Below are positions 3,821 through 28,400 of a stretch of DNA of 64,000 nucleotides, piece by piece (positions within the stretch are counted from its first letter, which is position 1; every line of letters begins with the position of its first letter). Both the position numbers and the translations under genes were made by a program. The notes below the pieces were generated by a model. The model did no database searches, had not been told where the DNA came from, and saw only the letters and a list, made by a program, of their open reading frames with translations. Where the stretch lies: positions 2,790,001 to 2,854,000 of the forward strand of contig JAUPSS010000001.1 in assembly GCA_040285825.1 (NCBI GenBank). The letters run 5' to 3'. This DNA is from Eukaryota sp. TZLM1-RC (lineage: Eukaryota > Protista > Metamonada: BaSk clade).

Positions 3821-4015
3821 GTAGTGAGAATAAAGAGCTCATCTATCAAATTTTACACTTGTCACCCATTTTCGACTTCTGGTTGCCTATTCTGGGAGGT
3901 TTTTAACCCTCAACTTGGTTTTGGGAGGTTTTCACTATTCCCACACTTTCCCCTCACTTCATAAACTAGGTTCATAAACTAGGTATCCTTTGTAAAAGTT
4001 GCACTGGAGTAGTCA

Positions 4016-4420: not shown

Positions 4421-4727
4421 TGTAATGTAAGATGCTTTTGTTAAATTAATTAATAATAAATCTAATATTCCCTTCGTTTACCATTGTTAGGCCTGGTGGA
4501 CAGTGTTAGGCCTGTTGGAGCGGTAACAGTCTTCTAATAATAGTTTTTACTAATCAATGCCAAATCAGTTCAGGAGCTTCTTAGCATAATAACGTGCCAA
4601 TAATGGTCAAATAAACAACAAAAAACATCAACTATTTATTTGTCAATTAACTTACTTTATTACAGATTGTCTAAATGTACAGAGATATCTTCAACAGTAT
4701 TGAAAAGGGCTTCCAGCTCTCGTTCGT

Positions 4728-6720
4728 CTAGCTGAATGTTAACATAAAAAAATTATTTTTGTCAATTTTGGCTTTTTCGGAAACAGTTAAGGGGTCCCTA
4801 TATTTTGATTGAGCCATTGGAATAAAAGAATCATTACAGACATCATTGGATCTCACATCTGTAATAATGGTAGTACCTTCAAGACCTTCAAGCATTAAAT
4901 CAGCTCTATTTTGACCAAAAGAATTCAAAGTTTCTTCATCAACCTAACGAGAAAGCAATGGTTCTAAATAAAAACTTTATAAGTGTGACTTTAACATGCA
5001 ATGATGCCGTAGGTTGGAAAAGTTGGTTAAGATAAAGGCAATAAGGAAAAGTGAATGATGAAAAGGTTGATTTATTTTCTCATCATAACATATAAGCCTT
5101 AGGGCGCCAACACTGCTTCTTCCCTTTTTCAAAATAAATCAGCTTATATGAATATGAAGCAAAACTATAACAAATTATTAAATAACTATAAAAACGAAGA
5201 ACTAAATACTGAATTCTACTGTTTTCTATTGTCTACAATTATCTTTGTAGTGATTGGGATTCACACAAACACTGGTTTCACATTTTTAAGATCGACAATT
5301 GATGTACTATGACTCTCCTACAATAATGTTAGTATAAGGTAGTAAGTAATAACTGAAAAGGGCCTCGTTCCAAGATCTGTGTGTTTGAATACTTTGTTGT
5401 GTATGTTTTAATCGCTACATAAAGAAGCTGTGCTTCTTTCCTTTTTTCTAAACGAGAAACGTGGTAGTGTCGTTTAGTAAAGGTATCATGGAATCGAAGA
5501 ATGGATTCGCTGATGATCATGCAGGGTCTATGTTAGATCAAAAACAACAGTAAGCAAAGTAACAAACCTCAGAAACGTGAAGGCGGCGTCTGTTGTTGTT
5601 AAAGTTCGGGCTTTTTGACTAAAAATATCAGAGGAGCAAGGACCGTATCTTTGCATTGTAATACAATATTAGTGGAGGTGGAATCTCTATTCGTCACCTC
5701 GTATGTAGTCGATTTTTATTGTGTTTGGCTCCCTAAGTCCCCTTTGCAACCCAAAGTTTGAAGCCCAACCTTTTTTCCTCTCTTTGGGGTCTGCTTCCAT
5801 AAAGGAGGGAGCTGCTCAAACAAACAGTAATTTGTAGGTTCGGGATGAGCTTCCGCGTCCTTCATAATTTGTTGGCGAAGTCCTTTCTCTTCGTCATCCA
5901 GTTCGTCTAAAACGGACTGAAGTTCTTCATATCCTTAAAGGACTGTCGAGTTTTCAGAACTTGAACCAACATTTGCGTTTTTTGGTGAGGAGGGGGGTGG
6001 TCCCGTTCCTGAACCTTTTTGTGGCATTAAGTTGGACTTGGAAGAGGCGGGAGTTGGTTCCGTGCCTGTTTCCATCGGTTTTCCTTGAGGAGGGGCGGAG
6101 AATGGTCTCGAGCCCGAGTCCTCTACTATACTAGTCTCTGCTACTTCTCTTACTACTCCTTCTGTTGACTGTATGCTAAATGCATCTCTTTCATGTTCCT
6201 GCATGTTAATTTTGATGGTGTCAGTGTTTTGGCTGGAAGGGACTGACATGATATCTGCTAAAGATATCCTCTGTAAAGAATGCTGGGTGTTGTCAAAGTG
6301 GTATACCGTATACCTATTTACCTATATGGCCAATAATTATTGATGCCGTAGGTTGGAAAAGTGGGTTGAGATAAAGGCAATAAGGAAAAGTGAATGAGGA
6401 AAAGGTTGATTTATTTTCTAATCATAACATATAAGCCTTAGGGCGCCAACAGCAATAGAGTTGATCTCTCACTGCATCATGAACTTTTGATCGGAAAGTA
6501 ATAAAATACTTACATTTAAGCAAATGATTTGGAGTAATAGTCAATCCACATTTACAGCGCAATTATGAGCCACGTCGTAAAGGCAAATATAACATCGGTA
6601 ACGCATTGTACAAGAAAAAGTGGTATAATCTCAAACTAAAGCATAGATTTAAGGAATATGAGTGATCAAACACAAAGAAGCAATTTTTTGGGCGTGTAAC
6701 AAAAATTAAACCGAATGTCT
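4728..6720 (-). pseudogene. CRE/SLACS-like non-LTR retrotransposon remnant (CCHC/RLE region), interrupted by LTR element C
   Basis: RSKVHDAVRDQLYCM and RADLMLEG..IITDVRS..EKAKIDK match the copies at 36462-37294 and 44681-46114. Confidence 0.75.
5002..6451 (-). mobile_element. Element C: non-autonomous (TRIM-like) LTR retrotransposon, 1450 bp, with 111-bp LTRs at 5002-5112 and 6341-6451
   Basis: TG...CA direct repeats, GCAA TSD (4998-5001 and 6452-6455), PPT complement at 5113-5130. Interior is related to the elements at 16848 and 25061. Confidence 0.9.
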
Positions 6721-7426
6721 ATGAACGTGTGTACTTGTGTGCTATCAATGTACATAAAATTTACAAAACAAAAACAACTTCAGCAAAACATTTTATTACT
6801 TATTGAGGGGACATATAGATCTATTGTGTCCTTCCTGGACACAAATACCACACATACGCCTTCTTGTTCTTCTTGCAGCAACTGAGGATGAAGCTTGTCA
6901 ACAGTGAACTGTTGTTGTACTGTTGATAAACCTCGGTCTGCTTCAATTGAACAGATTTTAGTGTAATAGATTTACAACTTGATCATGAAGCTAAGAAATC
7001 ATCTTGCAATATGATAATGTTTCCACTTCAACTTTGCAGACTAAGTATATCATCACCAGAGTTAGCGTTAATCTTCTATATGATTGATTTCTAGTAGAGT
7101 CCTTCACACAGCTTAAATCAAATACAGATTTTGCATATTTGATTGATAGAATTTTTGTAATCAATTCATCAATCACCAATTTCTGTTATCAAACTGGGAA
7201 CAACAAATTTTGATTCCACAACAACAACACTGAAAAATACAAAATAATCAGAGATAAACAATATTGTGATATATAAAATTACTCTGAAAGTTCATTGGTG
7301 TTGAGAAACCCCATTATACTAGAGGAAAACAATAGTAAAATAATTGCAACAAATCTAAATGATCAAACGAAACAAAAGTTCCCGGAGAACCTTACTTTTT
7401 GCAATTTACAACAAATACAAACACAA

Positions 7427-7972
7427 TCAGTCCTGCTTGGCTTTGCAAACACTGGTAAGGCGACTCAACTTTAAAATCACCAGGGTAATATCAAGAAACA
7501 ACCCAAACAGGAAGAAACCTAGACCAACGGCCAAGCGTAGTTTAAAAGATAAGGATTTACTGACAATGAAAAATCCCAAACAGAAAAGAGCAACAGGGGT
7601 AATCAAAAGGTTTACAAAAAATCCAACAGAAAAATTGTCATTAATGTCTGATGTGTTCATGTTCCATACATCAGGGTCTATATCCTTGACAAGGTCCTGG
7701 TACTGCATTCTATTTAAGGTTTCAGTATTGCAAAAATGGGAGTCATCAACTTGAGCTGACGAATCGTCAAATAAAACAGTAGAATGTAGTAGAATGTTGG
7801 ACAGACGGTTTTCGGATGGATTCAGAAACCCATCAATCCACAGTAGGTCATTTATAGAAAACTTATGAGCCTTGGAAAGGTGTTTCAGACGTTTCAAAGA
7901 AGCCTCATTATTACAGTTAAGTAAAGCGGCATGTACTAATGACCGAAAATCAGGAGTAGATTGGTAGTGCAT
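7427..7972 (-). CDS. TMEM199/Vma12-like V-ATPase assembly factor
   Basis: About 180 aa with YQDLVKDI followed by two C-terminal TM helices, as in Vma12/TMEM199. Confidence 0.55.
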   Translation of the reverse strand: MHYQSTPDFRSLVHAALLNCNNEASLKRLKHLSKAHKFSINDLLWIDGFLNPSENRLSNILLHSTVLFDDSSAQVDDSHFCNTETLNRMQYQDLVKDIDPDVWNMNTSDINDNFSVGFFVNLLITPVALFCLGFFIVSKSLSFKLRLAVGLGFFLFGLFLDITLVILKLSRLTSVCKAKQD

Positions 7973-8027
7973 ATGTTGGGTTTAATAAACCAAGATTTAT
8001 TTCCTTTTCGCATTTCAAATCAAATCA

Positions 8028-9680
8028 ATGTCTCAGACCGCTCCTTCTGTATCGTTGTACGTCGGTGATTTACATCCCAGAACTACCGAGGAAGAACTCC
8101 GTGAAACCTTCGGCAAGGTAGGAACCGTGTCTGGTGTTTTGGTCCTCAAGAATATGTATAACTCCAAGCCACTCGGTTATGCCTACATTAACTTCGCGAC
8201 GACAGAAGATGCCCAAAAAGCGTTGGACCAACTCAATTACACCAAGTTTCACGGAAAACCATGCCGCCTCATGTTTTCGGACCGCAATCCTGAAAAGAGA
8301 AAGAGTGGTGTAGGTAATCTCTTCGTCAAGAACATTCATCCTGACATTGATGTTGCCCGCCTCCGTGATGTGTTTTCCCAGTTTGGTGCTATCCTTTCGG
8401 CCAAGATTTCCACAGACGAGGAAGGTCGCAGCCTTGGTTACGGGTATGTACAGTTCCAGGACTCGTTATCTGCTGAAAATGCCCTCAAGGAGTTGAATGG
8501 AAAGGAAATCTCCGCTAGAGATGATGCCGAAGCCAAGAGTGTTATCACTGTTCAAAAGTTTATTCCTGCCACTCAACGCTATAAGATTGTTGGGGGTGTC
8601 AAAATCACCACAAACACTTTCTACAAAAACCTTCCACCGACACTGACTGAAGAAGAATTCAAAAAGCTCGTTACTGCTGACGGTAAGCGTGAGCTCAAGG
8701 CTTATCGCTTAACACTCAAGACAGAAGTTGGTCGTAAAATTGCTTTTGCTGATTTTGCCACAGTAGAACAGGCTCAGGAAGCTGTAGAAGAAATTCAAGG
8801 CCAGAAGATTGATGAATACGAAATTTATGCAAACTTCTTCCAACCTAAGAAGATCCGTGCCAGAATCCTTGAAAAGAATTATTACAGAACGTTATCTGAA
8901 CTGAAACAAGCATCCAAGGACAGAAATCTCTGGGTAGGTAATCTTCCACAAGATTATACGGACGACCAATTCATGAAGCTGTTCGCTCCATTCGGAAAAA
9001 TAACGTCCGCAACTATTATGAAGACCCCTGGTGGAGTTTCGCGACAATTTGGTTTTGTTTGTTTTGAATCCACAGAAGAAGCTAAAAATGCTATCTCTAA
9101 TTTAAATGGAAAGATCCCTGATCAAGCTCTTCAACCTCTCAAAATCTGTTTCTTTAAGCCCCAAAAGGAACGTATACAATTGAAAAAACAAGAAGCCGCA
9201 GTTCGTACCTACACTGGTCCAATGACGCGTTTTAATCCCCATCATGCTTATCGCTCTGGCAAAGCTAGACCAGGTTTACCTGGTGCAAGACCAACCCAAG
9301 AAGTTTACACTAAGGGTGCACGTAACGTCATGCCAGCTGTAACCTCACAAGAAGTTCCTCAAGTTAGTGTCCCTCCAGTTGCTGGTTCAGTCTCTGTAAC
9401 CCAACCCTCAGTTCCTGCTGTTGAAACTGGAGCTGAACCTTTGGACGAAAAACAACGTTTTATTGAATTGTTGAAGAATGAAGATGATGAAGCTGCCAGA
9501 CGCGAAGCTCTTGGTGACCGTTTGTACCCTCTTGTCGAGGCCAAAAATGCTGAACTAGCATCCAAGATTACTGGTATGATTTTAGCTTTGGAATGGGAAG
9601 AAATTGAAAAGGCTTATTTGGACGAAGATTATCTTAACGATACAGTGAATGAAGCTGTTCAAATCTTGAACAGTAAATAG
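8028..9680 (+). CDS. PABPC1: Cytoplasmic poly(A)-binding protein (4 RRM + MLLE/PABC)
   Basis: SLYVGDL, LGYAYINF, RKSGVGNLFVKNI, RQFGFVCF and C-terminal LGDRLYPLV...ASKITGMIL. Confidence 0.95.
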   Translation: MSQTAPSVSLYVGDLHPRTTEEELRETFGKVGTVSGVLVLKNMYNSKPLGYAYINFATTEDAQKALDQLNYTKFHGKPCRLMFSDRNPEKRKSGVGNLFVKNIHPDIDVARLRDVFSQFGAILSAKISTDEEGRSLGYGYVQFQDSLSAENALKELNGKEISARDDAEAKSVITVQKFIPATQRYKIVGGVKITTNTFYKNLPPTLTEEEFKKLVTADGKRELKAYRLTLKTEVGRKIAFADFATVEQAQEAVEEIQGQKIDEYEIYANFFQPKKIRARILEKNYYRTLSELKQASKDRNLWVGNLPQDYTDDQFMKLFAPFGKITSATIMKTPGGVSRQFGFVCFESTEEAKNAISNLNGKIPDQALQPLKICFFKPQKERIQLKKQEAAVRTYTGPMTRFNPHHAYRSGKARPGLPGARPTQEVYTKGARNVMPAVTSQEVPQVSVPPVAGSVSVTQPSVPAVETGAEPLDEKQRFIELLKNEDDEAARREALGDRLYPLVEAKNAELASKITGMILALEWEEIEKAYLDEDYLNDTVNEAVQILNSK

Positions 9681-9932
9681 TTTTTTAGTTTGTGATTGCT
9701 TTGTCATAACTTCATAAAAGAAAAATTTTCTACAATTTAGTTCTTGCCCGCGTGACATGGGCTATTTTAATTTTCACAATTAAAAGATTGCCAGTCAAAA
9801 TAACAATAAAAACAGACTGAAGCAGTTCATTCAATCCTTAAATAAAGTTGACGAATTAATTATGAATTGTGCCACAATTTTTTTTAAAATTCCAAAATCT
9901 TCAATTTATTTCTCCCCAAACATATTTCTCCA

Positions 9933-10730
9933 ATGCCTGCACGATTGTCACGTCAACAACAGTTTGCTTTAACCCACTTTTTGGATGTCACCCAGTCTGA
10001 TAGTACAACAGCTTTGTCGATCCTCCGACAGCACAACTTTAATGTAGAGACTGCACTTAATGATTTCTTTACCAGATCTCCAGTTCCTATGGAGGATATG
10101 TCACAAATGGAATCTGTCTTTCATAAATACGCAACAGATATTGAAGGTACAAAAACCATTCTTTTCGAAGGTTTCTCGCAACTTGCAGAAGATGTTGGAA
10201 TAGACCCTGGTAACATCAGGTGGTTGGTGTTTCTCTGGAAATCCGAGGCGGCCATCATGGGAGAAATCACAGAAGAAGAGTTTATTCGAGGATGTCGCAA
10301 AGTGGGTGCTCTCAACCTTCCCCATTTCTCCCAGAAACTTGCTGATATGCTTCACTACATAGAAGATAACAGATCTTTTAAACAGTTTTATAAGTGGTTA
10401 TTTGGTTTGAATTTTACATTTTTTCATCACAGATTACTTAAAGGTTGATCCTGAGCACAAGTCAGTTAGTATGTAAACTTCTTTGTTCTCATTTCAGCTG
10501 TTGATAATGCTGTCCATGCCTGGCGTTTGGTCTTGACTGATCGGTGGTCCTTGACTGAAGATTGGTGCAACTTTGTGTCTCAACAGTCAAAACTCAAGGT
10601 TGTAACCCGTGATTTGTGGAATGAACTGCTTTCTTTTATTGAAACAGTGGGTAATGACCTTACTAAGTGGTCTGCTGATGATGCTTGGCCATCAGCAATT
10701 GATCAATTTTGTGAGTTAAAATTGGTCTAG
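9933..10730 (+). CDS. DCN1: DCN1-like cullin neddylation E3 (UBA-like + PONY domain)
   Basis: N-terminal UBA-like FNVETALNDFF, MGEITEEEF, DLWNELLSF and C-terminal DAWPSAIDQF. Introns at 10405-10432 and 10469-10497 restore the frame. Confidence 0.88.
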
Positions 10731-12799: not shown

Positions 12800-14390
12800 A
12801 GAAAACTTATAAATCAACATCTAAATAATCCATCTCTCCCAAAACAAAACAACTAGATGCAACTCTCTCATAGTGAGATACAAGAGAAAGTAATGCATCA
12901 GAAAGCATCTTCAACATCCCCTTAAAATTAGAAAACGCAATTCGATTTTGCCAAAACAATCTGTTGAAATTTTTCTTAGTTCTATTCTTTACAATCATTT
13001 CAAAATCTGCCAAAAACGTATACCTCCATTTTTGGTTTTGTTTTAATTTAAGTAGTTCTATTACATATTAGTACATGAAATCTGTAGTATTTTTGCATTT
13101 TTTAGATTTGACAGAAAAAGAATCGGTTACTAAATATCATGGACTATTCGCTTGTAGTAATGGGTGATGTAGAGTCAATAGTTCGACAAAGCTTTTGGAT
13201 AGAGATAAGCTGTCATGCCAATTGCTGAACCCAAAATTAGTGGTAATTCCTTCAGCTCCGAAGCGTAATTGTATTTGCTTCTTAAGGAATTTCGAAAACT
13301 TTCAGCTAGTTTTTAGTTATCTTATGGGAAAAATTCAAAATTTAATTTTTGACTCCTCTACTCTTGAATCTCCTTCTAGTGTAATACAGGGCGACCATCT
13401 TGATCCTTTACTTTTTGGTTTGGATATTCGCAATATTATTGAATCTACGAAGAAACTTTTCCTGCATACGTATTGTGGCTTACATAGATAATATTTCATT
13501 AATCGGTTCTTTTTGAAAGCATTTGTAATGTTTCTGAACGTATTACCGACAAACTCAAAGAAATTGGATTAGCTTTGAAATTTCTGGTTTGCTGGCTTGG
13601 TAAGTTGGATGAAATTGATTCCCAATTAAACAAATTATATGAGAATTTTGATAAGGATCTAAGTTTGATTGCTGATTGAGTTATGTAAAAACATATCAAA
13701 TTAGTTATTCCGGAAAATTTACTCACATTTTAAGCCATAGTTCCGCCGCGACGTCTCTTAATTTTTGCAGATCTTTCAACAAAGTTCGGGTCAAATTCTG
13801 TTCTCCTTTACTAGAAGTCAATTAATCTATCATTCCTAAGCATCTTTTTTATTTTGTTGAAATGGGTATATTTGACTTTACAAAATCTTCTTTTGTGTAA
13901 AACAGCATTTTTAGGACAGGAAAAATATTTTTTTAATTTTTCCAATTGTTCCCTTCTGATGTTGATCTCATCAATAGTGAAACTAATTTTTACTTGAATC
14001 ATTACCAATCAGAATTAGATAATATGCTAGGTGATATTTGGAATCAGTGTTTTTCCAAAATGTTCAAGAAATTTCCAATCGAACACTCCCCAATTTACAT
14101 CTGCTTGAAAAAAGCTTCAGTGTTATCTTTTAAAATTGTCTGAAAGCTTGGATTATGAAGAATGACTTGGCTTGACCTTCAGTAAAAATCCCGCTTTTGG
14201 AAATAAAATTAAAAATATTTGAAATATTTCTGCTGCTGCTTTAGTTACCTAAATTTCATCTACTTATTCGCTTCTCTCAAGGGGCAATGAATGGCTTTTC
14301 AACATACGTTTTCATTGCTTTTTGTGGTCATACAATTTGCCTCGTCTTAGTGGGGAAAATTCCAAATTGTTAAATAGGCGAAACCTTTTT
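12800..14390. pseudogene. Degenerate CRE-like non-LTR fragments (minus strand 12800-13020, plus strand about 13150-14390)
   Basis: FNRLFWQNRI...DVDL terminus, IQGDHLDPLLF RT motif and similarity to 44681-46541. Confidence 0.7.
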
Positions 14391-15394
14391 CTTCTGTTAA
14401 TAAAATTTCTAATACCCATTATATTCTATATCCCTTTGTTTTTTCTTTGCTTGGTTCTTCAGGCAAGGATGCATTGGTATTCCTTAAAAATACAATACGT
14501 TCTGCGTAGTTGTAAAGGAAAGTAGTGGAAGAATTTTGAATCATGTTTATTGGCAAAATAGAATTGTGTTTTCAATAATTGAATGGAAAAATTGATTCCT
14601 GATTCACTATCTTCATTTGGTTGATTTTCAGAATCTTTAGCAATCAACTGTTTCGATATTGGAGGGACAGGTTTTGAAGACGCGGAGATGTGGTTGTGCG
14701 CATTTGGTATTTATAATTCTACTCGTTGTACATTAAAAGAATTAGAACAAAAAGTGGTAATGAAAGACCTCAGTATCTGTAGAGTAGATGGTATTTTCAA
14801 CTATTCCGTTCGAAATTGATCGTGTATTTTAAAGGAATTTCCCCAAGTATAAGCGAAAGTGTGGGATTGTTTAGAAGAGTTTAATGAAGGTTATCCTTAA
14901 GGTATCAGTATCAAAAAAGATAGCATTATGTATATCGAAATATATGGGAACCAGTTAATCTAGCTTTCGAGCTTGAACAAAACCATTAACCAAAAGTAAA
15001 GTCACTTCGCACCCTTTTAGTAGGTTTTGATCGAGTTCCTAACTGAAATCTGCGAACAACATAATAATAGTTGCTGCTGCTTCGCAATTGCAAATGCCTT
15101 CCAACATTAATAAGCAAACGCGCCTTTACCAGTCTGGGCAATTTTTGCCCACTCAAGCACGAGAAGAGACTCACTTAGATCGTGTTCCAAAGGGAAAGAA
15201 CATTGTATGTGATTATTCAGGTCATGTTCTGGGTGAATTCCAAAGAGAAGACAACAAGGACAAGGTCACACAAAAACAACTTCGACCAAAGTACAAAACA
15301 AGGCAAGCTACAAGAAGATCCGCCTTGTAGATTTAATTAACAAATCAAAAAACTTTTTATTTCAATAAACAAAGCTGTACAAATATGGCAATAA

Positions 15395-16318
15395 TTATGC
15401 TAAACCACTACAATCTTGAACTGTACCATCCTCATCATTACCTCTTGTCTTATTTAGCAACCCATTTGCATCAGCAAATTGCTGAAAGTTCTTGAGAAAA
15501 GGAAAGGCCTGGTGAGAAAGAGCTGTATCAGGCTGTGCAGGTTCCGTTTGAATAAAAGCCATCAATTGTGCGTGGTACTTATCCTCCACGTGGGCTAGAG
15601 GAGATTGTTCGTAAGCAACATTGAGAGTTTCAGCCATTTCAGCAGGCTGCAAAACCTCACCAACGAGTTCGATAATGTTATTCCTAAACGATGTTGAAAC
15701 AGTTGGTTCTATGCAACACTGAGCCAGAGCAGCTCCTACATCATTGATGGAAACCCAGGGTACATTAGTGTGTGGATGGAATGGTAAAGATAACTTGTTG
15801 TGAGAAAGAGTGGTATCTAACAACAAATGGTCGAAAAAAACGGCTGGCCGCAAAAGACAACAACGTTCAAACTTCAACTTTTTTGTGCGTAGGCAATCCT
15901 CTAGGTTGTATTTAGTTTTGAGAGGAAGGACACCTTTAGCAGCTCCTGCACTGATCCAAGAAGAGAACACAAAGTTCTTGATATTACTGGAATTGGTAGC
16001 TAGATTGATAATCTCTTGTCCAATCTCGTTCTCTTTTGCACATCCATCTTCAATGGTTTCACCGTAGTGAAGAGGATTTTGGATTAAAACAACAGTGTCC
16101 ATGTCATTCATTGCGTTACGCAGTGCAGAGGGGTCCGTGATATCAGCAACATAACACTCTATTTTGTCTTTATGGTGCTGTTGAATTTCGTGTAGGATTG
16201 GAGTAACAACTGAGCAGTATGCTCTAACTTTTGCGACTCTTTCTCCACAGTTCAGCAAACATCTGACACAGGAAGTGCCTTGGCGACCAGTTGAACCAAA
16301 TACAAGAATTCGTGACAT
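15395..16318 (-). CDS. NmrA-like NAD(P)-binding Rossmann protein
   Basis: ILVFGSTGRQG, FVFSS, LRPAVFFD, WVSINDVG. Confidence 0.85.
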   Translation of the reverse strand: MSRILVFGSTGRQGTSCVRCLLNCGERVAKVRAYCSVVTPILHEIQQHHKDKIECYVADITDPSALRNAMNDMDTVVLIQNPLHYGETIEDGCAKENEIGQEIINLATNSSNIKNFVFSSWISAGAAKGVLPLKTKYNLEDCLRTKKLKFERCCLLRPAVFFDHLLLDTTLSHNKLSLPFHPHTNVPWVSINDVGAALAQCCIEPTVSTSFRNNIIELVGEVLQPAEMAETLNVAYEQSPLAHVEDKYHAQLMAFIQTEPAQPDTALSHQAFPFLKNFQQFADANGLLNKTRGNDEDGTVQDCSGLA

Positions 16319-16539
16319 GTGAGAACAGACAGGGAGTATATAAGAGTTTAAGTCATCCCCAGTTTACAGTCAATCATTGACAAACTAATAACGAGGTGAC
16401 ATCTCATCACCTTTGATTTATCAAACAGTTGCAGCATCTACTCAAACAGACCTCCAACTTCTTTCAACTGCCACCATTGATGTTGGTGAGGACAGATTGT
16501 GAGAAATGCGGTTTTTGTCTTAACTTCAGAACTCATAAC

Positions 16540-16847
16540 TAATGAGACTACATTCATTGAACCAAGATTTCCTCTACAAAATCTTGATCTGCTTGTTGTC
16601 TAGCTAAAGCTTCTCTAATTCGATTGAAAAACCGAGCCATCATTTTTTAGGAATGAAACATTGCTTCGATTTGTGATAAAATTGGATGAATGGCCAGACA
16701 AAACAAACGAGGTCCCAAGGGATCTCCTTGCTTAACACCACATGATGATTTCAAAATAGAATCAGCAAAAAGCAAATCAGAATTTGTAAAACATGTTGTT
16801 TGAAAATAGGGCAACAATTCTGGCAAGTAATTCTACAAAGCGCCATG
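16540..16847 (-). pseudogene. CRE-like RT remnant split by LTR element A; continues at 24037 to about 24500
   Basis: GVKQGDPLGPRLFCLAIH on the left flank. Joined flanks align with 58430-58660. Confidence 0.75.
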
Positions 16848-17003
16848 TGTTGGCGCCCTAAGGCTTATATAATATGAATAGAAAATAAATCAGACTTTTC
16901 TTTACTACAATAGACTTTAGGCAACAATAATTATTGGCCATTTTAAAGTCAAAAGGTATACCATAACTTCAGCATTAGCGAACATCTTCAGACACTTTAC
17001 AGC

Positions 17004-18329
17004 ATGTCAGACATCTCCCAACCAGATATCTCTGACTCTAATCCACCACTTAATATGCAGCAGGTACCAGCATCACATACACATGATATAGAGGGCAACG
17101 AGGCAACGGACCCGGATCCCACCTCCCCCTCCCTTAATGTAGAAGAAGATGAAAGAGTGGACGAGGTCCCTCCATCTTCAACAACAGAAGAGGTAACGAG
17201 AACGGACCCGGCTCCCTCTCCCCTCAGGAAAAAAGTAACAGATGAGGTTACGAGAACGGACCCGGCTCCCTCTCCCCTCAGGAAAAAAGTAACAGATGAG
17301 GTTACGAGAACGGACCCGGCTCCCTCTCCCCTCAAAGAAATGGAAGAGGCAACGAGAACGGACCCGGCTCCCTCTCCCCTCCCAATTCTAGAACCTGTCT
17401 CAAAGGGAACGGATGGAGATCCCACCTTAGACACGTCTTCCCCATTAGGAGAATATGAAGAAATTCAATCTCAACTAGATGAAATGGAGGGAGAAGACGA
17501 CTCTTCTGAGGGGTTCTACAAGTTATTAAGAGAGGACGCGGAGGCTTACCTCGAACCAACAGATTTCTGTCTGTTCGAGCAACTTCCCCCTTTATGGAGT
17601 TACGTTCAAAAAAGAGGCAGAAACGTTGATTTCCAGACCCTCGGAATGATTGGGGATACCCAAAAGGTATTGGAAATTCCCCTCAATGAAAGGAATGAAC
17701 TCATAAAGGCACTCGATAAATTGAGTAGAGAGACATTCGGGCGTAACGCAGAACGCCGCCCCAGAATCTCTGGAATGGACAAGAGAATCAATGAATTGAT
17801 GTCTCTTCCCATCAAAGATAGATTGGATTGGAAGGCCTCCTTCCTAGATCAATACGGCAGGAGAATAAGGTTTCTCTCCATCGAACAGAGAAGTAGGACC
17901 GACTCGGAAGACATCCTACAATCCAAATTGCCTGCCTGGTTTGATCCTAACTTTGATACGGAAATCCATAATTACACGGAGCTGACAGAGGGTGCTCCCA
18001 CATATTTTAGGGAATTTATGGAGCAGGAGGATAGTAGTGAACAAGACAAGCTTGAACCAGTAACCCCCTGGTTTGATGCAGACGCTCTAAATAACATTCA
18101 TACGGAACGATCAGCTGTATCCACGTATAGGAGCCGTCCTAACAACTACACCCAACAACATGGTAACTCGTTCACAAAACAACGAGAGTTTAGACAATGG
18201 GTAACGGGAGATCCATCCACATCTCTCCACCTTCCCAAACTGCCTGTTGTAGCCCCTATAATTTCTGAAAAAGCCAACCAATACAGGTCTGCTCTATCGA
18301 CAGCATACCCGATCATGTTCCAACAGTGA
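17004..18329 (+). CDS. Element A ORF1: acidic/Pro-rich protein upstream of gag, function unknown
   Basis: 441-aa ORF starting 77 nt after the 5' LTR. Homologous fragments occur in elements B and C. Confidence 0.75.
   Translation: MSDISQPDISDSNPPLNMQQVPASHTHDIEGNEATDPDPTSPSLNVEEDERVDEVPPSSTTEEVTRTDPAPSPLRKKVTDEVTRTDPAPSPLRKKVTDEVTRTDPAPSPLKEMEEATRTDPAPSPLPILEPVSKGTDGDPTLDTSSPLGEYEEIQSQLDEMEGEDDSSEGFYKLLREDAEAYLEPTDFCLFEQLPPLWSYVQKRGRNVDFQTLGMIGDTQKVLEIPLNERNELIKALDKLSRETFGRNAERRPRISGMDKRINELMSLPIKDRLDWKASFLDQYGRRIRFLSIEQRSRTDSEDILQSKLPAWFDPNFDTEIHNYTELTEGAPTYFREFMEQEDSSEQDKLEPVTPWFDADALNNIHTERSAVSTYRSRPNNYTQQHGNSFTKQREFRQWVTGDPSTSLHLPKLPVVAPIISEKANQYRSALSTAYPIMFQQ
17189..17385 (+). repeat. 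Coding tandem repeat, about 54-bp unit (EVTRTDPAPSPLRKKVTD), 4 copies
   Basis: Repeated acgagaacggacccggctccctctcccctc. Related units at 33350-33590 on the minus strand. Confidence 0.9.
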
Positions 18330-20167
18330 ACGTCCCGGAACCTGTAACAAGACAAGACGTTGCACCTCAGGAAGAACCAACTTCCTCTCAACCCATGGAA
18401 AGTGAAATTGGAGAAGACATTGAGTTGAACGGGCCAGTCGTTGGAGAAACGGCTCCTCCTCAACCCTCAGTAAGAGACTCTTCTTCCGATAGACCTATGC
18501 GTATTGAGGACCTACAATCCTCAAGAAGAGCTATTGACATGAGCATAGCTAGTAGCCTTCATAGACAGATTGATCCACGGTCTAAGGATATCGACTATAA
18601 AAGACCTCGATTATCCGCTGATGACCCTATTAACAAAATGTCTATCATAGCTTTTCTTTTAAAATATCAAACTTGGGATAAATACGGGCGAAAGATAGCT
18701 AATAGAAGCTTCGAAGCCCCAGGTCAATCAGATTGGACCAGAGCCTTTATGATAGCTACCCAGCTATTTGGAGAAGGCCAAGCAGAAATAACCCAAGATA
18801 GGATTAAAGATCTCCCCAAACATATACGCGACGAGATCACCAGGGATACAACACAGCCTTTGGTAAGGATTGATCCAGCTATAACAGATAAGCTCGGACC
18901 CCCAATCCACCATTATGATTTATTTAGGAGCATGATGATGAGCACTTGCCCCACAGGAATATCCAGCATGATCGACCCTAGCCTTCTATCTAGATGGCAG
19001 AGTCAAGGTTTACTCGGTGTTGATTATACCGACGCCGACGTCATGGTATTTCTGTTAAAAAGAACGCAATTCACATCATATCATGAGGCTTGTACAGCTC
19101 TAATGAAGCCTAGAATAAATTGGAGGAAAATCCACAATAGGCATGAGGCTGACAACGAGTTTGGTCGTTATGTAGAAGATTTTGGAGACGTCTTGAGAAT
19201 GACCACCTACATGACCGACCTAACCATCCCCGATTTAATTAGAGGAAGCAGTGGGTTGATAACCATATCTCCCGCTCTAATAGCCGAGTACTTCCTTATG
19301 GGTCTGGATAACTTTGCTATATCAAGCGAACTCCTCCCAGTATGGACTAGGGAATCCTTGTGGGACTCACCGAACAAAACAACTCTACTCGATTTGATAT
19401 CGACAACGAGAAGACATTTCCTCGCTTGGTGTTACACAGCAGGAAACAAGCCCACAATGGATGTACTAAGGAACAGGGCTAACGAAGAAGATATTCCTTT
19501 GGGACTCACGGCAATGAGAACTTACTCAAGAGGAGTAACACCATCAGCCCAGGCTCCAACAAAACGAGCAAGACGATCAGGTGGAAAGTCAAGAGGAACC
19601 CCTCAACACAAATACATCCCTGAAAAGCATGAACGAGAAGGGTCAAAATTCTGTACATTCTGCAGCAACGTCGAAGGTAACAATCCTGTTGGCCACACTG
19701 TATTCGAATGCAAAGATCCTCGTTGTGCTAGAAGCAGAGTTCCCAAAGAAGAAAGATTCAGATTAGGAGAACAGGAGGCGCCTGCTAGTAGAGGCAGTGT
19801 AGAAAGGGGCCGAGGTGGCCGTGGTAGACGTGTACATAGATTCAAATTTAGAGGCCGTGGAGGCCGTTATAGAGGTCATAAAGGAAGAGGTCAGTACAGA
19901 CCTATACATAACATAAACACAACAGAGGACATATCATCAAACGCATCCCCTACTGAGTCAAAACCGACCCGTTCGAGTACGGTTCCTCACAGACGGATCA
20001 ACAACAGCAACCGGAACAGCAGGACAGGCAACTTTCCTAATCGGGTACATATCAACGCAATCAATCACAACCAATCAACAACCGATTTAGGAAACCCAGT
20101 CAACAACTTTCCAACAGCTCAACAAAATCTTTTTAATTCCTCTACAAATTCACCAAACCAGCTCTGA
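18326..20167 (+). CDS. gag: Element A gag-like ORF
   Basis: Zinc-knuckle-like CTFC..GH..EC..C followed by an RG-rich nucleocapsid tail. Start codon uncertain (GTG 18326 or ATG 18395). Confidence 0.75.
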   Translation: MNVPEPVTRQDVAPQEEPTSSQPMESEIGEDIELNGPVVGETAPPQPSVRDSSSDRPMRIEDLQSSRRAIDMSIASSLHRQIDPRSKDIDYKRPRLSADDPINKMSIIAFLLKYQTWDKYGRKIANRSFEAPGQSDWTRAFMIATQLFGEGQAEITQDRIKDLPKHIRDEITRDTTQPLVRIDPAITDKLGPPIHHYDLFRSMMMSTCPTGISSMIDPSLLSRWQSQGLLGVDYTDADVMVFLLKRTQFTSYHEACTALMKPRINWRKIHNRHEADNEFGRYVEDFGDVLRMTTYMTDLTIPDLIRGSSGLITISPALIAEYFLMGLDNFAISSELLPVWTRESLWDSPNKTTLLDLISTTRRHFLAWCYTAGNKPTMDVLRNRANEEDIPLGLTAMRTYSRGVTPSAQAPTKRARRSGGKSRGTPQHKYIPEKHEREGSKFCTFCSNVEGNNPVGHTVFECKDPRCARSRVPKEERFRLGEQEAPASRGSVERGRGGRGRRVHRFKFRGRGGRYRGHKGRGQYRPIHNINTTEDISSNASPTESKPTRSSTVPHRRINNSNRNSRTGNFPNRVHINAINHNQSTTDLGNPVNNFPTAQQNLFNSSTNSPNQL

Positions 20168-20270
20168 TATCAATAGCATTTTTGATATTAATTCTACGGT
20201 TAGTGAAAACCACGTCAGGTCCCAGCGTTCTCCATTTCTAAGACTGGAGATATCAATAAATGATATTAAA

Positions 20271-23200
20271 ATGATTGCGACTATAGATTCGGCTGCGTTT
20301 TGTTCAGTTATTACTGCAGATTTAGCTGAACAATGCCATATGTCAATCAATAGCAAGGATACTATTAAGTTCTTACCAGCTAATAACGTATCCACAAAAT
20401 CGCTAGGGAGTGCAACTGGTATTCTGTCGTTCAACGTAGGAAGCATTGCGCAACAAGTTCACTATAAACATACTCTTCCCATAATCCCGGGTTCGAACAA
20501 ATTATTAATAGGGACAGACATGTTAAAAGCACTTGGGCTTCAGACGGATGATGGTCTTTTCATTAGATTAGACAAAGAACACCGCACTTTGCTAAATGCA
20601 GAATCAGAATTCGACTCTAGGATCGCTCAACATTCGATTGGGAACTTAGATAACCAATCACCAAGTCCTTCTGATTTTGAGGAGCAATTAGCAAGATCTG
20701 GATGTGAGATAAATTTAGATGATAGTAATAATAAATTAAAATTAACGAGTCTACTAAAATTATTCAGCGATGTTTTTAGTGAAACTCCTAATAGAAAAGG
20801 AATCGATTGTAATCCTCTAACAATCCCCTTTAGAGATGAGAATGCTATAGTACATAAACCTGCTAGACGGTTAAATCCCAGCAAAATGGAAATAGCAAAC
20901 AAAATATTTGATGAACTGATCGAAATGGGCTATGCAGTTGAATCTAATTATAAATTCAGCTCTCCTATTGTCTTAGTTATATACTTTGACGGCAAAAAAC
21001 CCAGGTTAACTGGAGACTTTAGTGGTAAAGATGGAGTTAATGCCCATACGATTTCAGTAGAGCCTAATCTACCTAGGATTAGTGATATTTTAGAGTTTTT
21101 AAGTAGAGCAGATTACATAGCCACGCTTGATTTACCAAAAGCTTTCTGGCAGATGAATGTAGCTGAAAAGGACATTGAGAAAACATCAATCTCAATCCCT
21201 GGAAGGTCAATTATGTTTAAAAGAGCTTGCTTCGGATTAAAGAATATCCCAGCAGTTTTTCAAAACGTAATGATGGAAATATTCCAAATTGATGGCGTTT
21301 TCATATACATTGACGATATCATAATAGTTGGAACGACATTCGAAGAATTTTATAAGAGATTACAAAGAGTCCTCCAATGCGCCAGAAATAGACGTGTAAA
21401 TATAGGCTTACGTAAATGTAAATTCGTAACATCAAAACACCCTATCGACATTTTAGGAAGTACCTTCCAGGATAAAACTAGATTTATAAGTAAGAAAAAA
21501 ATCGAAGCCTTGATGAGAATCCCTAGACCAAAAACAGTGAAAGAAGTTCGCTCATTGGTAGGATCCATAAATTACATTAGAGATTGGCTTCCAGGTATTT
21601 CTGAATTAATTGCTCCAATTAACGAGCTAATTAAAGGAAAACCCAGAATAATTAAATGGACTAGCAAGCATGACGATTACTTAAAACAAATAAAAGACTT
21701 AATAGTAAACCACATGCCCCTTGAATTACCAGCTCCGGGCAAGCGAGTATTGATAAGTACTGACGCTTCAGATGTAGCAGTAGGAGGTGTTATTTGGCAA
21801 GAAATTGAACCCTACTCCCCTGCAGGAACCCCGCTAAATAAAAGGAAAGTAAAACCTTTGTCATTCTATAGTAGATTACTTACAGAAACACAAAGAAAAT
21901 GGTCCACCTTACAAAAAGAATTATATGCAATACTTTTGATTTTAACTGAAAGTTGTTTAGAAAGCTACCTGTTAACTAGACATTTAACAATTTTCACAGA
22001 TCATAAAAACATTGCATTCCTGGCAACAGCCCCAGAGAAAAATAGAATTGTAAAGAGATGGCTGCCGATACTATCTGAATTCAACTTTGACATAGTCCAC
22101 GAACCTGGTGAAGACAACCATTGGGCAGATATGTTATCGAGGAATATTGATTTGGATCAAAATGAGGAAGCTCCTTCTATTTGTAGTATAAATATACCAG
22201 ATACTTTACTTTCAAATTACGAGATACCTCCACTAGACGATGATTCTGATTCGGACCTTGAAGACATCCCATCAATCTCATCTCTAAGTAGACACCAAGA
22301 CCTACCTATCTTTTCTTCTTGGTTCTCTAAGATAAGATCTGAACAACAAATAGCCAAAAATAACAACGACTCGTTATTTGAAAATGCAATTCTAGATGAA
22401 AATACTCAAATTTGGAAAAATAATAAAAACAAAATTTTGATTCCAAAGAGCCTCAAAAAACAGGCACTTCTATTAATACATGGTTTGGTTCAATCTGGCC
22501 ACCCTAGCAAAAACGATAGTTTACACAAACTATCCAAAAGCGATTTTTACTGGCCCAATATGAGAAAGGACCTTATTAATCATGTCAAAAGATGCCCAAC
22601 TTGTCAAAAAACGGCTCCAGTTAAAAGATCAAAAACACCTTCCACAGGATCTTTATGGGCAGATCGTCCTTTTGCCAGATTAAATGTCGATACAATTGGA
22701 CCCCTAAATTCTGACAACGAAGGAAATAAATATCTATTAGTATTTGTAGACTCTTTTACTGGATATACAATTTTAGTCCCTCTAAAAGAACTCAATGCCT
22801 TAGAAACCGCAGATGCCTTGATTTGGAATGTTTGCGCTATCTTCGGCATACCTATGTTAATTCATAGTGATAATGGACCTGAGTTCGCCAATGAGACTTT
22901 CAAAATAGTGTGTAACAGATTAGCGATTGAGATGAGTAACTCAATTCCCCACTATTCAGAAAGTAATGGACTTGTAGAACGTAAACATAGAGACGTTCTT
23001 CAATGCTTAAGGAAACTATTAATAGATTTCAATGATTACGGAAATTGGTCTACATACGTACCTATATCCCAACTATTAATAAATTCTACTAAAAGCAGAA
23101 AAACTGGTTTTACCCCATACGAACTCATGTTCGGTTCTTCGATTAGTCCAAGAACAGACCCTGCTAATATATTAGGAAATTTATCCAAATTTGAAACTAA

Positions 23201-23809
23201 TATCCCTTTATTAGATGACATCAAAATGAAAAACACTCGTCTACAAGAAAAAGGGAAGAAGCAGAGCGTCACCAAACATTAAATACTCCGTCTTCAGTAG
23301 ATAATACTAATTCGTGTTTTATAGTATTTAATATTGGTGACTACGTCTTACGTAAAACCAAGCAAAATAATAAATTGCATGGATCTTGGAATGGACCATT
23401 TTTAGTTATTGACCTTCCTTCCAAATCCACTTTATTATTGAAGAATCTTACTACTGGCACAGAATTAAAAGCTGCCAAGAAAGATTGCAAAATCTATAAC
23501 GCAGAAAATCCACAGGACATTGAATTCCTCAAGGCAGTCGCTGCGGGCGATTCCGAAAAACACGTTATAGAGAAAATCCTCTCAGAATACCACTCTGATT
23601 CAGGTAGTTTCTGTACTGTTCAGTGGTTTGGCGGTGAGACAACAGAAGAGCCACTCCATTCGGTTAGACACTCAGAAGCTTATAAGTTATTTAGTAAGGA
23701 AAACAAGAAAATTGGAAAACGTACCATTAGTCGACGACAAGGTACCTCCAATGAGTCTACGCCTTCTAAGAAGCCTAGACGCAGTAATAGAATTAGGAAG
23801 AGGAGCTAA
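20271..23809 (+). CDS. pol: Element A pol (PR-RT-RNase H-IN-GPF-chromodomain), with a 1-nt frame break near 23250
   Basis: IDSAA protease, LDLPKAFWQ and YIDD RT, TDASD RNase H, HHCC + D,D35E integrase, WNGPF, and VIEKIL..VQWFG..TEEP chromodomain-like tail. Confidence 0.92.
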
Positions 23810-25429
23810 TTCTTAGTTTATATCGATTATTTATATTATATTATATTATTTATATTATATCGATTATATGTATTTATTATAGTTGTTTTGTTAATTGTAT
23901 ATAGTTTTTATTTCATATTCATATAAGCTGATTTATTTTGAAAAAGGGAAGAAGCAGTGTTGGCGCCCTAAGGCTTATATAATATGAATAGAAAATAAAT
24001 CAGACTTTTCTTTACTACAATAGACTTTAGGCAACACATGAATATTTCCCCTATTAATTGAATTGAACGCATTACTAAAATACAACAACATACATTGGAT
24101 TCATTTTGATGAAATAGAACATCTGTAGCAAAGACAGCTGAAGAACTCCATCAGTGGTATTTATACCGTATTGGAACGTTAACAATCTTTTTTGCTTTTT
24201 TATTGAATCTACTTAAACAGCAAGCTGAAAAATTTTGAGCAAAGTTTCAGAAATTGCAATTGGACGAACAGCCATTTTGAAGTTTTTGACAAGTTCAGTC
24301 AAACGTGAACATCATAATTCTTCAAGATATTTGAGCTGGCCAGATAAAACTCTATTAAAAAATTTTGTTATTATAATTAGACAATCTTCTAGAGGAATAA
24401 CCGCAGCTTTGGTATGAACTCTATATAGATTTAGAAATACCTGCAGACTTTTCAAGTTTCATAAAAGTATTAATAATACATGTTAAAATAGAATCGTCCA
24501 ATGGTTGGATTAATTTTGTGTGCAATCTATTGGTGCGATTATTGAGACTAACTGACGATTCATCGAGGAATATAGTAGCACCTACATTGGATGAATTACA
24601 AAGTGCTTATGATACAAATTTGACTGATATTCTAATAAAAATTCTTGAGACGTGTTTGTTCTGGGGCTTGATGGATCACTGATTGTTACTGATGTCAGAT
24701 CCACTGATGTTGTAAAAAGTTCAATGAAAATTTGCACTTTTATTGAAATCATGATTACCAGGAGCTGAGGAGCCCAAATTATACTGAAAAAAATCAACTT
24801 ACACACCTACTACCTAATACCTGCTTTGTCATTTTGCCTTCTTCTTATGTGGAACTTTGAGTGAAGCTGTTTCATCGTTTTTAGATGATTTTTTTCAATT
24901 CGTCAAAAATAAAACTGGAAGAATTTTTTCACCGAACTGTAATATCTTGTCCAAAAAACCAACATCTTGTGCTTAAAGATTTTCCTTCCATCATCAATTT
25001 TGCTGTACATTTGACAATTTACAGATTTGTGGATGTGAATAGGAGCCTCCAACAACTCTCTGTTGCCTAAAGTCTATTGTAGTAAAGAGAAGTCAATGAG
25101 GAAAAGTTGATTTGTTTTTTAATCATATTATATAAGCCTTAGGGCGCCAACACTGCTTCTTCCCTTTTTCAAAATAAATCACCTTATACGAATATGAAAC
25201 TAAAAATATGAACAAATAACTAAATAACTCCAACTACTAAGAACTAAATACCAAATTCTGATGTTTTCTATTGTCTACTATTGATGGTCTTGGCTGTTGG
25301 TTATTGTCTGACATACAATGTAGAGTAACAGAAGTGTAATTTATTACGAAGAGGAATTGTATTCTCTCTTCTTAAGCTAACAGGCGGAATACTAATAACT
25401 AAACTATTAACTATAAATACTATTCAAGA

Positions 25430-28400
25430 CTAACACTGCCTTTTCCTCTCTTTCGAGCGACGAGCCCTGGAAGCTCTAGTCACAGGAGGTGAACTAATGG
25501 AAATATGACGCTTCTTGGGAGGAGCGGATTTAGTACGGCGACGTGCTTTTGAAGTCTTGATAAAGTCTTTATACACGGCAGTATTTTGGACTGTAGACAC
25601 ATGTTCGGTGGTGATCTCTTTTCCAGGCCATTGCACTTGGCAAAAGTCACCATCCTGACTGAGCACTTCTTCAATGATGTGTTCTTCGACATCACCTGCA
25701 GCGACCCAGGAGTGGAACTCATCGTTGGTGGGCAAGCTGGAGTGCCAGGGTGCTAAATGTTTGACGCTAGCTTGGACAATCGTACCTGTGCAGAGATTCT
25801 TAATATTCACAGACGAATTGGATACGATTTCAGTAATTAGGAAGGGTCCTAAATAGTCTCCATGAAGCTTAGCGGAAGAGCCAGATGCTCTCAATACCAA
25901 TTGACCAACTTCAAAAGGGTTTGGAGTTGACGATCTAGTTAGCTTGGAAGCTTTGGAAGCTTGATGGTGTGCTGCCTTTTCCTGTTTCTCTTTCAATCTT
26001 CGAAATTTAGATTGAATTTCTTGAATAAAAGATGACTCAGACGTCGAGCTTTCAATGATTTCAAGAATTTTGCCAGGGTCTGATCTGGGGGACACATCTG
26101 AGCCAAAGATCACTTGGTATGGGGTGTGGTTGGTTATTGAGCTCTTGGAAGAGTTGATCAATAATTGCACATAAGGCAAGTATTCAGACCACACATCGTA
26201 GGCATTGAAGTCTACGAGCAATTTCCGTAGGTTTTGCAGGATGTCTCTGTGTCGGCGTTCTACCAGGCCGTTGGACGGAGAAAACCTAGGTATTGACTTT
26301 GACACCTCTATGCCCAAAAATTTGCTTAATTCGTCAAAGACAGCCTTGGAAAATTCGGGTCCATTATCGCTGTGGATTTGAAATGGAATACCAAAGATGG
26401 CACAGACTTTCCAAATTAATGCATCTGCAGTAAGATTGGCATTTATCTCTTTTAAAGGCACGATGATCGTGAACCTAGAGAAGCTGTCAATAAATACGAG
26501 GATGTATTTGTAGCCTTCTTGATCTTCTGGAAGAGGACCAATGACGTCGGCGTTGACGCGAGCAAAAGGTCTGTCAGCCCACAATGAACCGGTTGGGGGA
26601 ACATGCAGTTTGGGAACTGGCTTTGTTTTCTGACAGGAGGGGCATTCTTGGACGTGCTTATTCATGTCGGTGAGCATGTTTGGCCACCAATAATCGCTGT
26701 TTCTGAGCTTGTTCAGGCTTTCAGCTTTGCTTGGATGACCTCCTTGCAGAAGTCCATGCAACAAGTTAAGGGTGTCCTTAATGAGTGATTTGGGAATCAC
26801 TATCTTGTTGTCGTGAGTCATATATAAATCAAGATGATTGTTATGAACACAGTTGTTGAAAGAGGGGTCTTTGGATGCTATGGCAAGCTTCTGTTCGGAC
26901 CTAATCCTACAGAGCCATGGCTCGAAAATAGGCAGGTCGTTGGAACATCGTTCTCTGATGACCATGATACGTTCGAAGTTGTTTAAGTCTTCGATGTAGT
27001 ATCTTTCATTTTCTGTTCCATCAATTTTATCAATGTAAAATATTGGATGAAAATTTGGAGGCATTTGATGGGACAAATGATTGATCTCTTGATGGTCTAT
27101 AGGCGGAACTATTCGAGACAACATATCAGCCCAGAAGTTATCTTCCCCTTTGGTATGTACCAAATCAAAGCAGAATTCAGAGAATATGGGTAACCATCTT
27201 GTTACAATTCTGTTCTTCTCAGGAGCCGTGAACATGTAGGTAAGGTTTTGATGGTCTGTGAATATAACCAGTTTCCTTCCTTTCAAGTAGTTTTCAAAAC
27301 CACTTTGAGTTAACATGAGTAGGATAGCATAGAGTTCCTTTTGGTTTGTCGGCCAGTTCTTTTGCGAGTTGGTTAACAACCGGCTGAAGAAGCTGATAGG
27401 CCTACATTTCCTGTTGATCAGGGGGGTACCGGGGTCGTCGACTTGTTCGATTTGTTCCCATATGACGCCGCCTACAGCAATGTCGGATGCGTCGCAACTA
27501 ATTAAAATTTGGTTTTCCAGCGGAGGTAAGCTGAGCGGCATGTGCTTCGCTATCAGTTGTTTGATCTTTTGAAGGAGTTCGTCGTGCATGTCGGTCCATT
27601 GAAGGCGTTGCGCGCGGGGTTTGGGTTTAACTTTGGAGTTATTTCCATCCTTCTTAGTCAATCTGATGATAGGAGCGATGAGCTCAGATACCTGAGGAAG
27701 CCATTTTCTAATGAAGTTGATTGATCCTACGAGGCTGCGGACGTCTTTGATTGTCTTTGGTCTAGGTAGATTCAGCAAAGATTCAACGCGAGTGGGATCG
27801 ATAGTCCGTTGTTTGTTTTGGAAAACACTGCCCAGTATCTTGATTGGGTGTCTGGAAGACACGAAATGGCACTTTGGAAGTCCCAAGGAAACTCTTTTGC
27901 ATCTGGCTTGATCAAGGACGCGACGGAGGCGTTCAATGAATTCGTCAAAGGTTGAACCTATGATTATGATGTCATCTATGTAAATGAAGACACCGTCTCC
28001 CGAGAAGATGTCAGCCATGACGTTTTGGAAAACGGCTGGGACATTCTTTAGGCCAAAAGCTGGACGTTTGAACATGATGCTTTTGCCAGGAATGCTCAGG
28101 GCTGTTTTCTGCCAATCCTTTTCGGCAATCTTGAGTTGCCAAAAGGCTTTGGGGAGGTCAAGGGTGCCTATGTAGTTCGCTTGGGAGGGAAATACCAGCA
28201 CATCGGAGATCCTTGGAAGGTTGGGCTCAACAGGAATGGTGTTGGCGTTGACTCCGTCTTTGCCACTATAGTCACCGGTAAGGCGGGGCTTACGGTGATC
28301 TGGGTAGACCACTAGACAGACAGGGGAGCTGAACTCATGGTTCGATGGGACAGCAAATCCTGAGTCTACGAGTTCGTCGAAAATTTGGTTAGCGACCTCT

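Follow-up and report, generated by a model that had tools for sequence, protein, structure and literature searches.

The window, by which we mean the whole 64,000-nucleotide stretch of DNA analysed here, carries genes for a poly(A)-binding protein, a pantothenate kinase and a DNA photolyase, together with two tRNA genes, a separate RVT_1 open reading frame, and four copies of LTR retrotransposons that we call A, B, C, and D (Table 1). A further 651-aa open reading frame, at 1865-3820 on the minus strand, has a C-terminal Cas12f1-like TNB domain (Pfam E = 2.2e-06), and its product would fit a Fanzor/TnpB-type nuclease. Also present is a repeat pair (41775-42419 and 44606-45250) beside the palindrome AAAGCATGCTTT, which we rejected as LTRs because it is a duplication whose end is the 3' part of an open reading frame.

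The LTR ends of the four elements were set by comparing the 5' and 3' copies, in combination with 4-bp target-site duplications (TSDs). A sequence-only reading of the window had described four complete elements; of these, only A and D are autonomous, whereas B and C are non-autonomous copies of ~1.45 kb, and B is interrupted by D. At all four junctions, an 8-nt self-complementary spacer separates the terminal CA of the LTR from a TG. The palindromes had been located exactly in that reading, with CAATAATTATTG at 6331, 16925, and 33768 (three matches in the window, against 0.02 expected) and CAATACGTATTG at 32478 (one match, against 0.00 expected), each running from the terminal CA of the 5' LTR. 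The 5' LTR of element A contains both a TATA-like TATATAA and an AATAAA. In the same element, the extended imperfect palindrome around the junction is computed either to form a hairpin in cis or to form a 20-bp primer:template duplex in trans (−15.9 kcal/mol).

Table 1. Coordinates of the retrotransposon features and other genes; positions refer to the window unless a locus is named.
Feature	Position	Strand	Details
Element A	16848-24036	+	TSD CATG at 16844-16847 and 24037-24040
A, 5' LTR	16848-16926	+	79 bp, TGTTGG...GGCAACA; 100% identical to 23958-24036
A, palindrome	16925-16936	+	CA-ATAATTAT-TG, 12 nt, from the LTR terminal CA; candidate primer-binding site
A, extended imperfect palindrome	16913-16950	+	GACTTTA-GGC-[AA]-core-GCC-[ATTT]-TAAAGTC; from folding
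A, second palindrome	16954-16961	+
A, coding region	17004-23282	+	ORF1 17004-18329; ORF2 18326-20167; pol 20271-23282 (RT, RNase H, integrase)
A, polypurine tract	23941-23957	+	aaaaagggaagaagcag, abutting the 3' LTR
A, 3' LTR	23958-24036	+
Element B	33869-25061	-	TSD GAGA; A-like, non-autonomous, ~1.45 kb minus the D insertion
B, 5' LTR	33778-33869	-	92 bp; LTR pair, TSD GAGA
B, palindrome	33768-33779	-	CAATAATTATTG
B, second palindrome	33743-33736	-
B, 3' LTR	25061-25152	-
Element C	6451-5002	-	TSD TTGC; non-autonomous, 1.45 kb
C, 5' LTR	6341-6451	-	111 bp; TSD TTGC
C, palindrome	6331-6342	-	CAATAATTATTG; arms ACCTA-C-GGC-[AT]-core-GCC-ATA-TAGGT
C, second palindrome	6312-6305	-
C, 3' LTR	5002-5112	-
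Element D	32641-25282	-	TSD ATAG; nested in element B
D, 5' LTR	32488-32641	-	154 bp, TGTTAGTC...GACCATCA; TSD ATAG; gag ATG at 32520 inside
D, palindrome	32478-32489	-	CA-ATACGTAT-TG; gag ORF reads through (S-I-R-I-G)
D family, second palindrome	32458-32451	-
D, pol ORF	25430-29623	-	Protease, RT, RNase H, integrase
D, 3' LTR	25282-25435	-	Preceded by polypurine tract gaaagagaggaaaaggcag
gag ATG in 5' LTR, D	32520	-
gag ATG in 5' LTR, other loci	L002 ~8174; L005 ~7023; L006 ~9141; L010 ~9137
L004, LTRs	L004:9895-9985 and 15286-15376		100% identical; TSD AATG
L007c	L007:18040-18840	-	~0.8-kb miniature LTR element with its own LTR pair, TRIM-like; CAATAATTATTG junction
Poly(A)-binding protein gene	8028-9680	+	4 RRM + MLLE
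tRNA-Trp and tRNA-Leu genes	43441-43514, 44203-44282
Pantothenate kinase (Fumble) gene	50577-51848	-
Separate RVT_1 ORF	57683-58675	-
DNA photolyase gene	60093-61517	+

The domain order of pol is that of Ty3/gypsy elements: Pfam identified protease, RT, RNase H, and integrase in D, as well as RT, RNase H, and integrase in A, and detected no chromodomain. The integrase lies after RT-RNase H, which places the elements outside Ty1/copia. Moreover, they possess (i) direct LTRs, (ii) TG...CA termini, except in L004, which ends in TA, (iii) short TSDs, being 4 bp in A-D, L002, L004-L006, L009a, and L010a, and (iv) polypurine tracts adjoining the 3' LTRs. Element D had been regarded as unrelated to the others, a view that does not hold, as its pol is 56% identical to that of A in a multiple alignment and falls into the same clade of the pol tree. 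The closest proteins are hypothetical ones annotated as 'Eukaryota sp. TZLM1-RC' (90-100% identity), followed by those of GEM-RC1 and TZLM3-RCL (50-60%). TZLM1-RC corresponds to Skoliomonas litria, an anaerobic, free-living soda-lake metamonad, and GEM-RC1 and TZLM3-RCL are further Skoliomonas isolates (PMC11603281); the text of the Skoliomonas genome paper nowhere mentions retrotransposons or transposable elements. The LTR pairs of A, L003-L007, and L010 are 100% identical, indicating that the system works today. Taken at the level of sequence, these are active-looking, probably young Ty3/gypsy LTR retrotransposons that appear to lack a tRNA primer-binding site. In the A, B, and C families, the LTRs start with TGTTGGCGCCC (16848-16858 in A), just past the polypurine tract, and this motif resembles the tRNA-type TGGCGCCC; the likeness is probably coincidental, and other families do not have it.

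For comparison, ten loci were fetched from three Skoliomonas assemblies (GCA_040285825.1, GCA_040285855.1, and GCA_040285805.1), and LTR pairs were sought by self-alignment, which is blind to palindromes. The survey comprised 16 junctions in about 300 kb. Twelve elements (A, B, C, D, L002, L003, L004, L005, L006, L007a, L009a, and L010a) came from the self-alignment, whereas the other four junctions (L007b, L007c, L009b, and L010b) came from a palindrome search and are thus ascertained. A perfect 12-nt palindrome starts from the LTR terminal dinucleotide in 12/12 of the self-alignment elements, across three Skoliomonas species, and at all 16 junctions the LTR is directly followed by a palindrome that takes in its final A and has an 8-nt palindromic core. 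The spacer occurs in six forms (ATAATTAT, ATACGTAT, ATGATCAT, GTAATTAC, ATTATAAT, and TTAATTAA), each of them 8 nt long and palindromic, and these forms differ from one another solely by matched double changes. While CA is a near-universal LTR end, the LTR of L004 ends in TA, and the bases after its spacer are TA in place of TG, so that the 12-nt palindrome is kept; its LTRs are identical, and the element therefore appears to have been recently active. The palindrome is also retained in the non-autonomous copies B, C, and L007c, as expected of a cis-acting replication signal. The palindrome at the LTR end is a real feature of these elements, with strong comparative support.

Three of the surveyed loci have unusual structures. 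L001 and L008 contain only 3' LTRs, their elements being 5'-truncated or interrupted, and in L001, from Skoliomonas sp. GEM-RC1, a 6.8-kb duplicate (2975-9792 and 14097-20913; 99.6% identity) flanks the 5'-truncated gypsy element. The 3' LTR of the L009 element (9859-10030 compared with 17012-17096) has an internal deletion of ~90 bp relative to the 5' LTR, the remainder being identical, and the TSD ATTC confirms its ends.

The sequence-only reading had noted a compensatory change in the palindrome of D, and a covariation test upheld such changes. We compared 13 distinct rows over the six pairs of the core and found that 78/78 cells are paired and that four of the six pairs include changes on both sides; the observed pairing and covariation scores were reached by none of 500 shuffles, and the covariation signal was lost when the partner was slid by 1-3 columns. 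The two innermost pairs also covary, the central tetramers being AATT, ACGT, GATC, and TATA. A hairpin requires at least three unpaired bases in its loop, so these innermost positions are unable to pair within one strand. Given their strict self-complementarity, the sequence must pair with a second copy of itself, unless it is instead recognised as a symmetric site in duplex DNA. Covariation of the central bases thus points to two-copy pairing and argues for pairing between molecules, as had been suggested when a symmetric annealing of two RNAs was put forward. Furthermore, the six sequences are alike only in their self-complementarity, which favours nucleic-acid pairing over recognition by a sequence-specific protein. 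In a quick version of the pol tree, sister elements carry unlike spacers (ATACGTAT in L002 and GTAATTAC in L006; ATAATTAT in L004 and ATGATCAT in L005), and an identical spacer reappears in lineages that are not sisters; together, these two observations indicate that the double changes arose several times.

Beyond the core, all families share a common architecture, comprising (i) the palindrome of 12-14 nt, (ii) a small bulge or internal loop (1-4 nt), and (iii) two to four G+C-rich pairs, which read GGC/GCC, GACC/GGTC, GTC/GAC, CC/GG, AGG/CCT, or ACAG/CTGT. In some families, an additional outer helix lies beyond these pairs. Of the arms previously described for A, C, and D, all are present; only about half of the families have strong long outer arms. 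The earlier proposal that each leader matches its own U5 was borne out: the U5-leader arms have a mean of −6.8 kcal/mol with their own partners, against −4.8 kcal/mol with those of other families (permutation p = 0.0004). A 12-bp A+U-rich duplex would by itself be weak. When the U5 end and the leader are included, the modelled primer:template duplex extends to 13-20 bp with energies of −9.7 to −21.9 kcal/mol (mean −14.9 with own partners, −8.4 across families), and in this model it would be comparable to the 11-nt site of Tf1 or to an 18-nt tRNA site, thereby giving the covarying arms a role. Folding energies of dimer and monomer are uninformative in this regard, since any palindrome computes lower as a dimer than as two hairpins.

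Protein coding does not account for the palindrome. In D, L002, L003, L005, L006, L007a, L009a, and L010a, the gag ATG lies within U5 and the open reading frame continues through the palindrome; hence, in most families the coding sequence spans the end of the LTR as well as the palindrome and the leader arm. The palindrome is read in two frames, giving S-I-R-I-G in D and N-N-D-H-C in L005, and it is non-coding in A, B, C, and L004, in which the start codon is shifted downstream. That it is kept across two frames and in non-coding leaders indicates that the constraint is not one on protein.

To our knowledge, all well-studied LTR retroelements prime from host tRNAs, except for the Tf1 group, in which the 5' end of the element RNA serves as primer. 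The end of U5 is defined by the first base that is copied into minus-strand DNA. An LTR that ends at CA without long trimming therefore requires a primer whose 3' end pairs with the first base of the spacer. The spacer has no complement other than itself and is unable to self-pair in cis, so that the natural primer would be another copy of the RNA that has been cut past base 8. We accordingly favour, with a probability of roughly 45%, the reading that the palindrome is a primer-binding site for a primer derived from the element's own RNA and acting in trans, that is, a site for self-priming. Two co-packaged genomic RNAs would pair via the palindrome, and the U5 end of one would pair with the leader of the other, to give 13-20 bp in total. 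An RNase H-type cut past spacer base 8 of one RNA would leave a 3'-OH, which reverse transcriptase would extend, copying the partner's terminal CA first and so producing the observed LTR boundary. The last ~10 nt of the primer would be copied during plus-strand synthesis, which would regenerate the spacer and TG in each cycle, and such renewal would account for the TA/TA variant of L004. The expected primer would be an element RNA ending in ...AUAAUUAU or ...AUACGUAU and joined to DNA that starts with TG.

We consider it unlikely that the palindrome is solely a dimer-linkage or packaging signal, similar to a retroviral dimer initiation site, with some other element supplying the minus-strand primer. 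Covariation of the central bases does imply the two-copy pairing that a dimerisation site needs. Further, a second 8-nt palindrome lies 18-23 nt past the main one (GGTATACC in elements A, B, and C, occurring twice in C; AGGATCCT in the D family) and could be an accessory dimerisation site; it is absent from the other families, and 8-nt palindromes are frequent by chance. Dimerisation by itself, however, gives no reason for the exact register with the last two bases of the LTR in 12/12 elements or for the palindrome's tracking of the change from CA to TA. In addition, retroviral sites place the palindrome in a loop with a separate primer site alongside, whereas here the stem has the palindrome as its apex, and the search for a separate primer site, either as a common downstream motif or as a complement of the LTR, yielded none.

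We see even less chance that a host RNA, such as the 3' end or a fragment of a tRNA, primes at the TG(G) eight bases past the LTR, with integrase trimming the tail and the U5-leader pairing acting as a cis helper stem of the kind found in avian retroviruses (U5-leader or U5-IR stems). TGG does follow the spacer in 8/13 families, the U5-leader arms do fold in cis, and Tf1 integrase reportedly removes primer remnants; trimming of an 8-nt tail by integrase could occur here too and would void the argument based on the LTR boundary. In the remaining 5/13 families, however, TGC, TGT, or TAT stands in place of TGG, and the sequence after TGG varies among close relatives while tracking each element's own U5. 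Within 150 nt downstream in the 13 families, no TGG-initiated 10-mer is common to any two, and no 9-mer is common to three or more. Five host tRNAs from the window and the fetched loci (Trp, Leu, two Pro, and His) gave only chance 6-7-mers at the post-LTR sites, so that none of the five matches; among them, we found no TGG with an 8-18-nt complement near a 5' LTR of the kind that marks tRNA-primed elements. These results are in line with the earlier suggestion that a tRNA site is missing. A cis stem would also leave the covariation of the central four bases unexplained.

It is improbable, more so than priming by a host RNA, that the palindrome is a symmetric double-stranded DNA site for a dimeric protein (integrase or a host factor) or a promoter element. 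Dimeric DNA-binding proteins typically use palindromes, and this one lies just past the presumed promoter. Against this, six sequences that keep their self-complementarity without a motif show the pattern characteristic of nucleic-acid pairing; in cDNA that has yet to integrate, the palindrome's right half lies away from the LTR end, on which integrase acts; and covariation of the arms around a bulge or internal loop would be meaningless in duplex DNA. Least probable of all is cis self-priming in the manner of Tf1/sushi, in which the first ~11 nt of the transcript would fold onto the post-LTR site and be cut off as primer, since these elements, while gypsy-type and devoid of a tRNA site like the Tf1 group, (i) have no LTR complement of at least 7 nt to the first ~30 nt past the LTR in any of 12/12 elements (LTR taken without its last 6 nt), as the sequence-only reading required, and thus no post-LTR site complementary to an ~11-nt transcript 5' end within the 5' LTR, (ii) place the gag ATG upstream of the U5 arm in the eight elements named above, so that the transcript does not begin at that arm, and (iii) have no detected chromodomain.

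Self-priming in trans through the palindrome can be set beside several known systems. The sequence-only reading knew of no described case, which was an overstatement, because a palindrome with the same architecture has been published, and left unexplained, in the fungal Ty1/copia element GalEa (Donnart et al. 2017, PMC5445492). In GalEa, a 'Conserved Hairpin Site' abuts the LTR in the absence of a tRNA primer site; its sequence is CA-CTGATCAG-T or CA-CTAATTAG-T, variation falling on the third and sixth positions, which are paired, and according to its authors it fits no known model (PMC5445492). A second, nearly complementary copy, CHSeq2, lies 6-41 nt downstream and has a fixed A/A mismatch (PMC5445492). 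The GalEa and Skoliomonas elements are alike in having the LTR-terminal A, an 8-nt palindrome, and T, as well as in having no tRNA site. They differ in that GalEa is copia-type, fungal, and equipped with CHSeq2, whereas the Skoliomonas elements are gypsy-type and have no CHSeq2-like second copy, the best candidate within 150 nt having 2-5 mismatches in 10; moreover, the Skoliomonas palindrome spans 12-14 nt with CA/TG included and, unlike that of GalEa, is partnered by the U5 end and the leader. An Rfam search returned no match for the A junction and, for the D junction, a single chance match to a human lncRNA (E = 0.22, far under the gathering score).

Tf1, Tf2, and Tj1, of the sushi group, are Ty3/gypsy-type elements that are tRNA-free and take the primer from their own RNA (PMC4600332). 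The Tf1 site, which is non-palindromic, complements the first 11 nt of the mRNA, whereas the Skoliomonas site complements only itself. By the title of a 1996 paper, Levin is said to have described RNase H cutting an RNA duplex in Tf1, and by that of a 2000 paper, Haag et al. reportedly described trans priming between co-packaged Tf1 RNAs; on these titles, Tf1 would be a precedent for both of the unusual steps, namely cleavage of an RNA duplex and priming in trans. Retroviral dimer initiation sites and U5-leader or U5-IR stems likewise involve self-complementary RNA pairing near the primer site and pairing of U5 with the leader; retroviruses differ in having a separate 18-nt tRNA site and a palindrome that sits in a hairpin loop, out of register with the LTR end. 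In dictyostelids, Skipper elements (PMC5006619) differ as well, with a polypyrimidine stretch and no palindrome.

As a control outside Skoliomonas, a JGI metagenome scan yielded 80 gypsy loci at 22-32% identity, of which 10 had both LTR ends resolved. TGG lies 0-5 nt from the LTR end in 8/10 of these, some of them with classic tRNA-type sites, and a palindrome starting from the LTR end is absent from all 10 resolved environmental gypsy loci. The best match from outside Skoliomonas is L011, an environmental chromovirus on a telomere-bearing contig that ends in TTAGGG repeats. Its junction (5826-5995) reads ...ATCACA-GTATTAATAC-TCTG, with an LTR of 158 bp and no TGG, and a 12-nt palindrome, AGTATTAATACT, begins at the final A of the LTR. 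The trait may thus exist beyond Skoliomonas, and L011 is a possible independent case of a palindrome at the LTR end. More tentatively than for the Skoliomonas elements themselves, we raise a wider proposal that we hold to be possible but doubtful: that there is a third mode of minus-strand priming, in which two co-packaged RNAs would pair via a palindrome straddling the end of U5, one or both would be cut within the duplex, and each would prime the other, with copying of the primer restoring the palindrome in each cycle and with GalEa and at least one environmental chromovirus (L011) having arrived at this mode independently.

In summary, our comparative analyses describe a new form of the putative tRNA-independent priming site, from a new host lineage and a superfamily other than that of the published GalEa precedent. 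LTR annotation that expects a tRNA-complementary site would find none here, which could leave such elements unrecognised or unclassified. The Skoliomonas families provide natural compensatory variants, along with apparently active copies that have identical LTRs, and they make the question of priming directly testable. If self-priming in trans is true, reliance on a site that pairs only with another copy of itself would couple priming to genome dimerisation and make the element independent of host tRNAs, and a hitherto unexplained feature of fungal copia elements would be accounted for.
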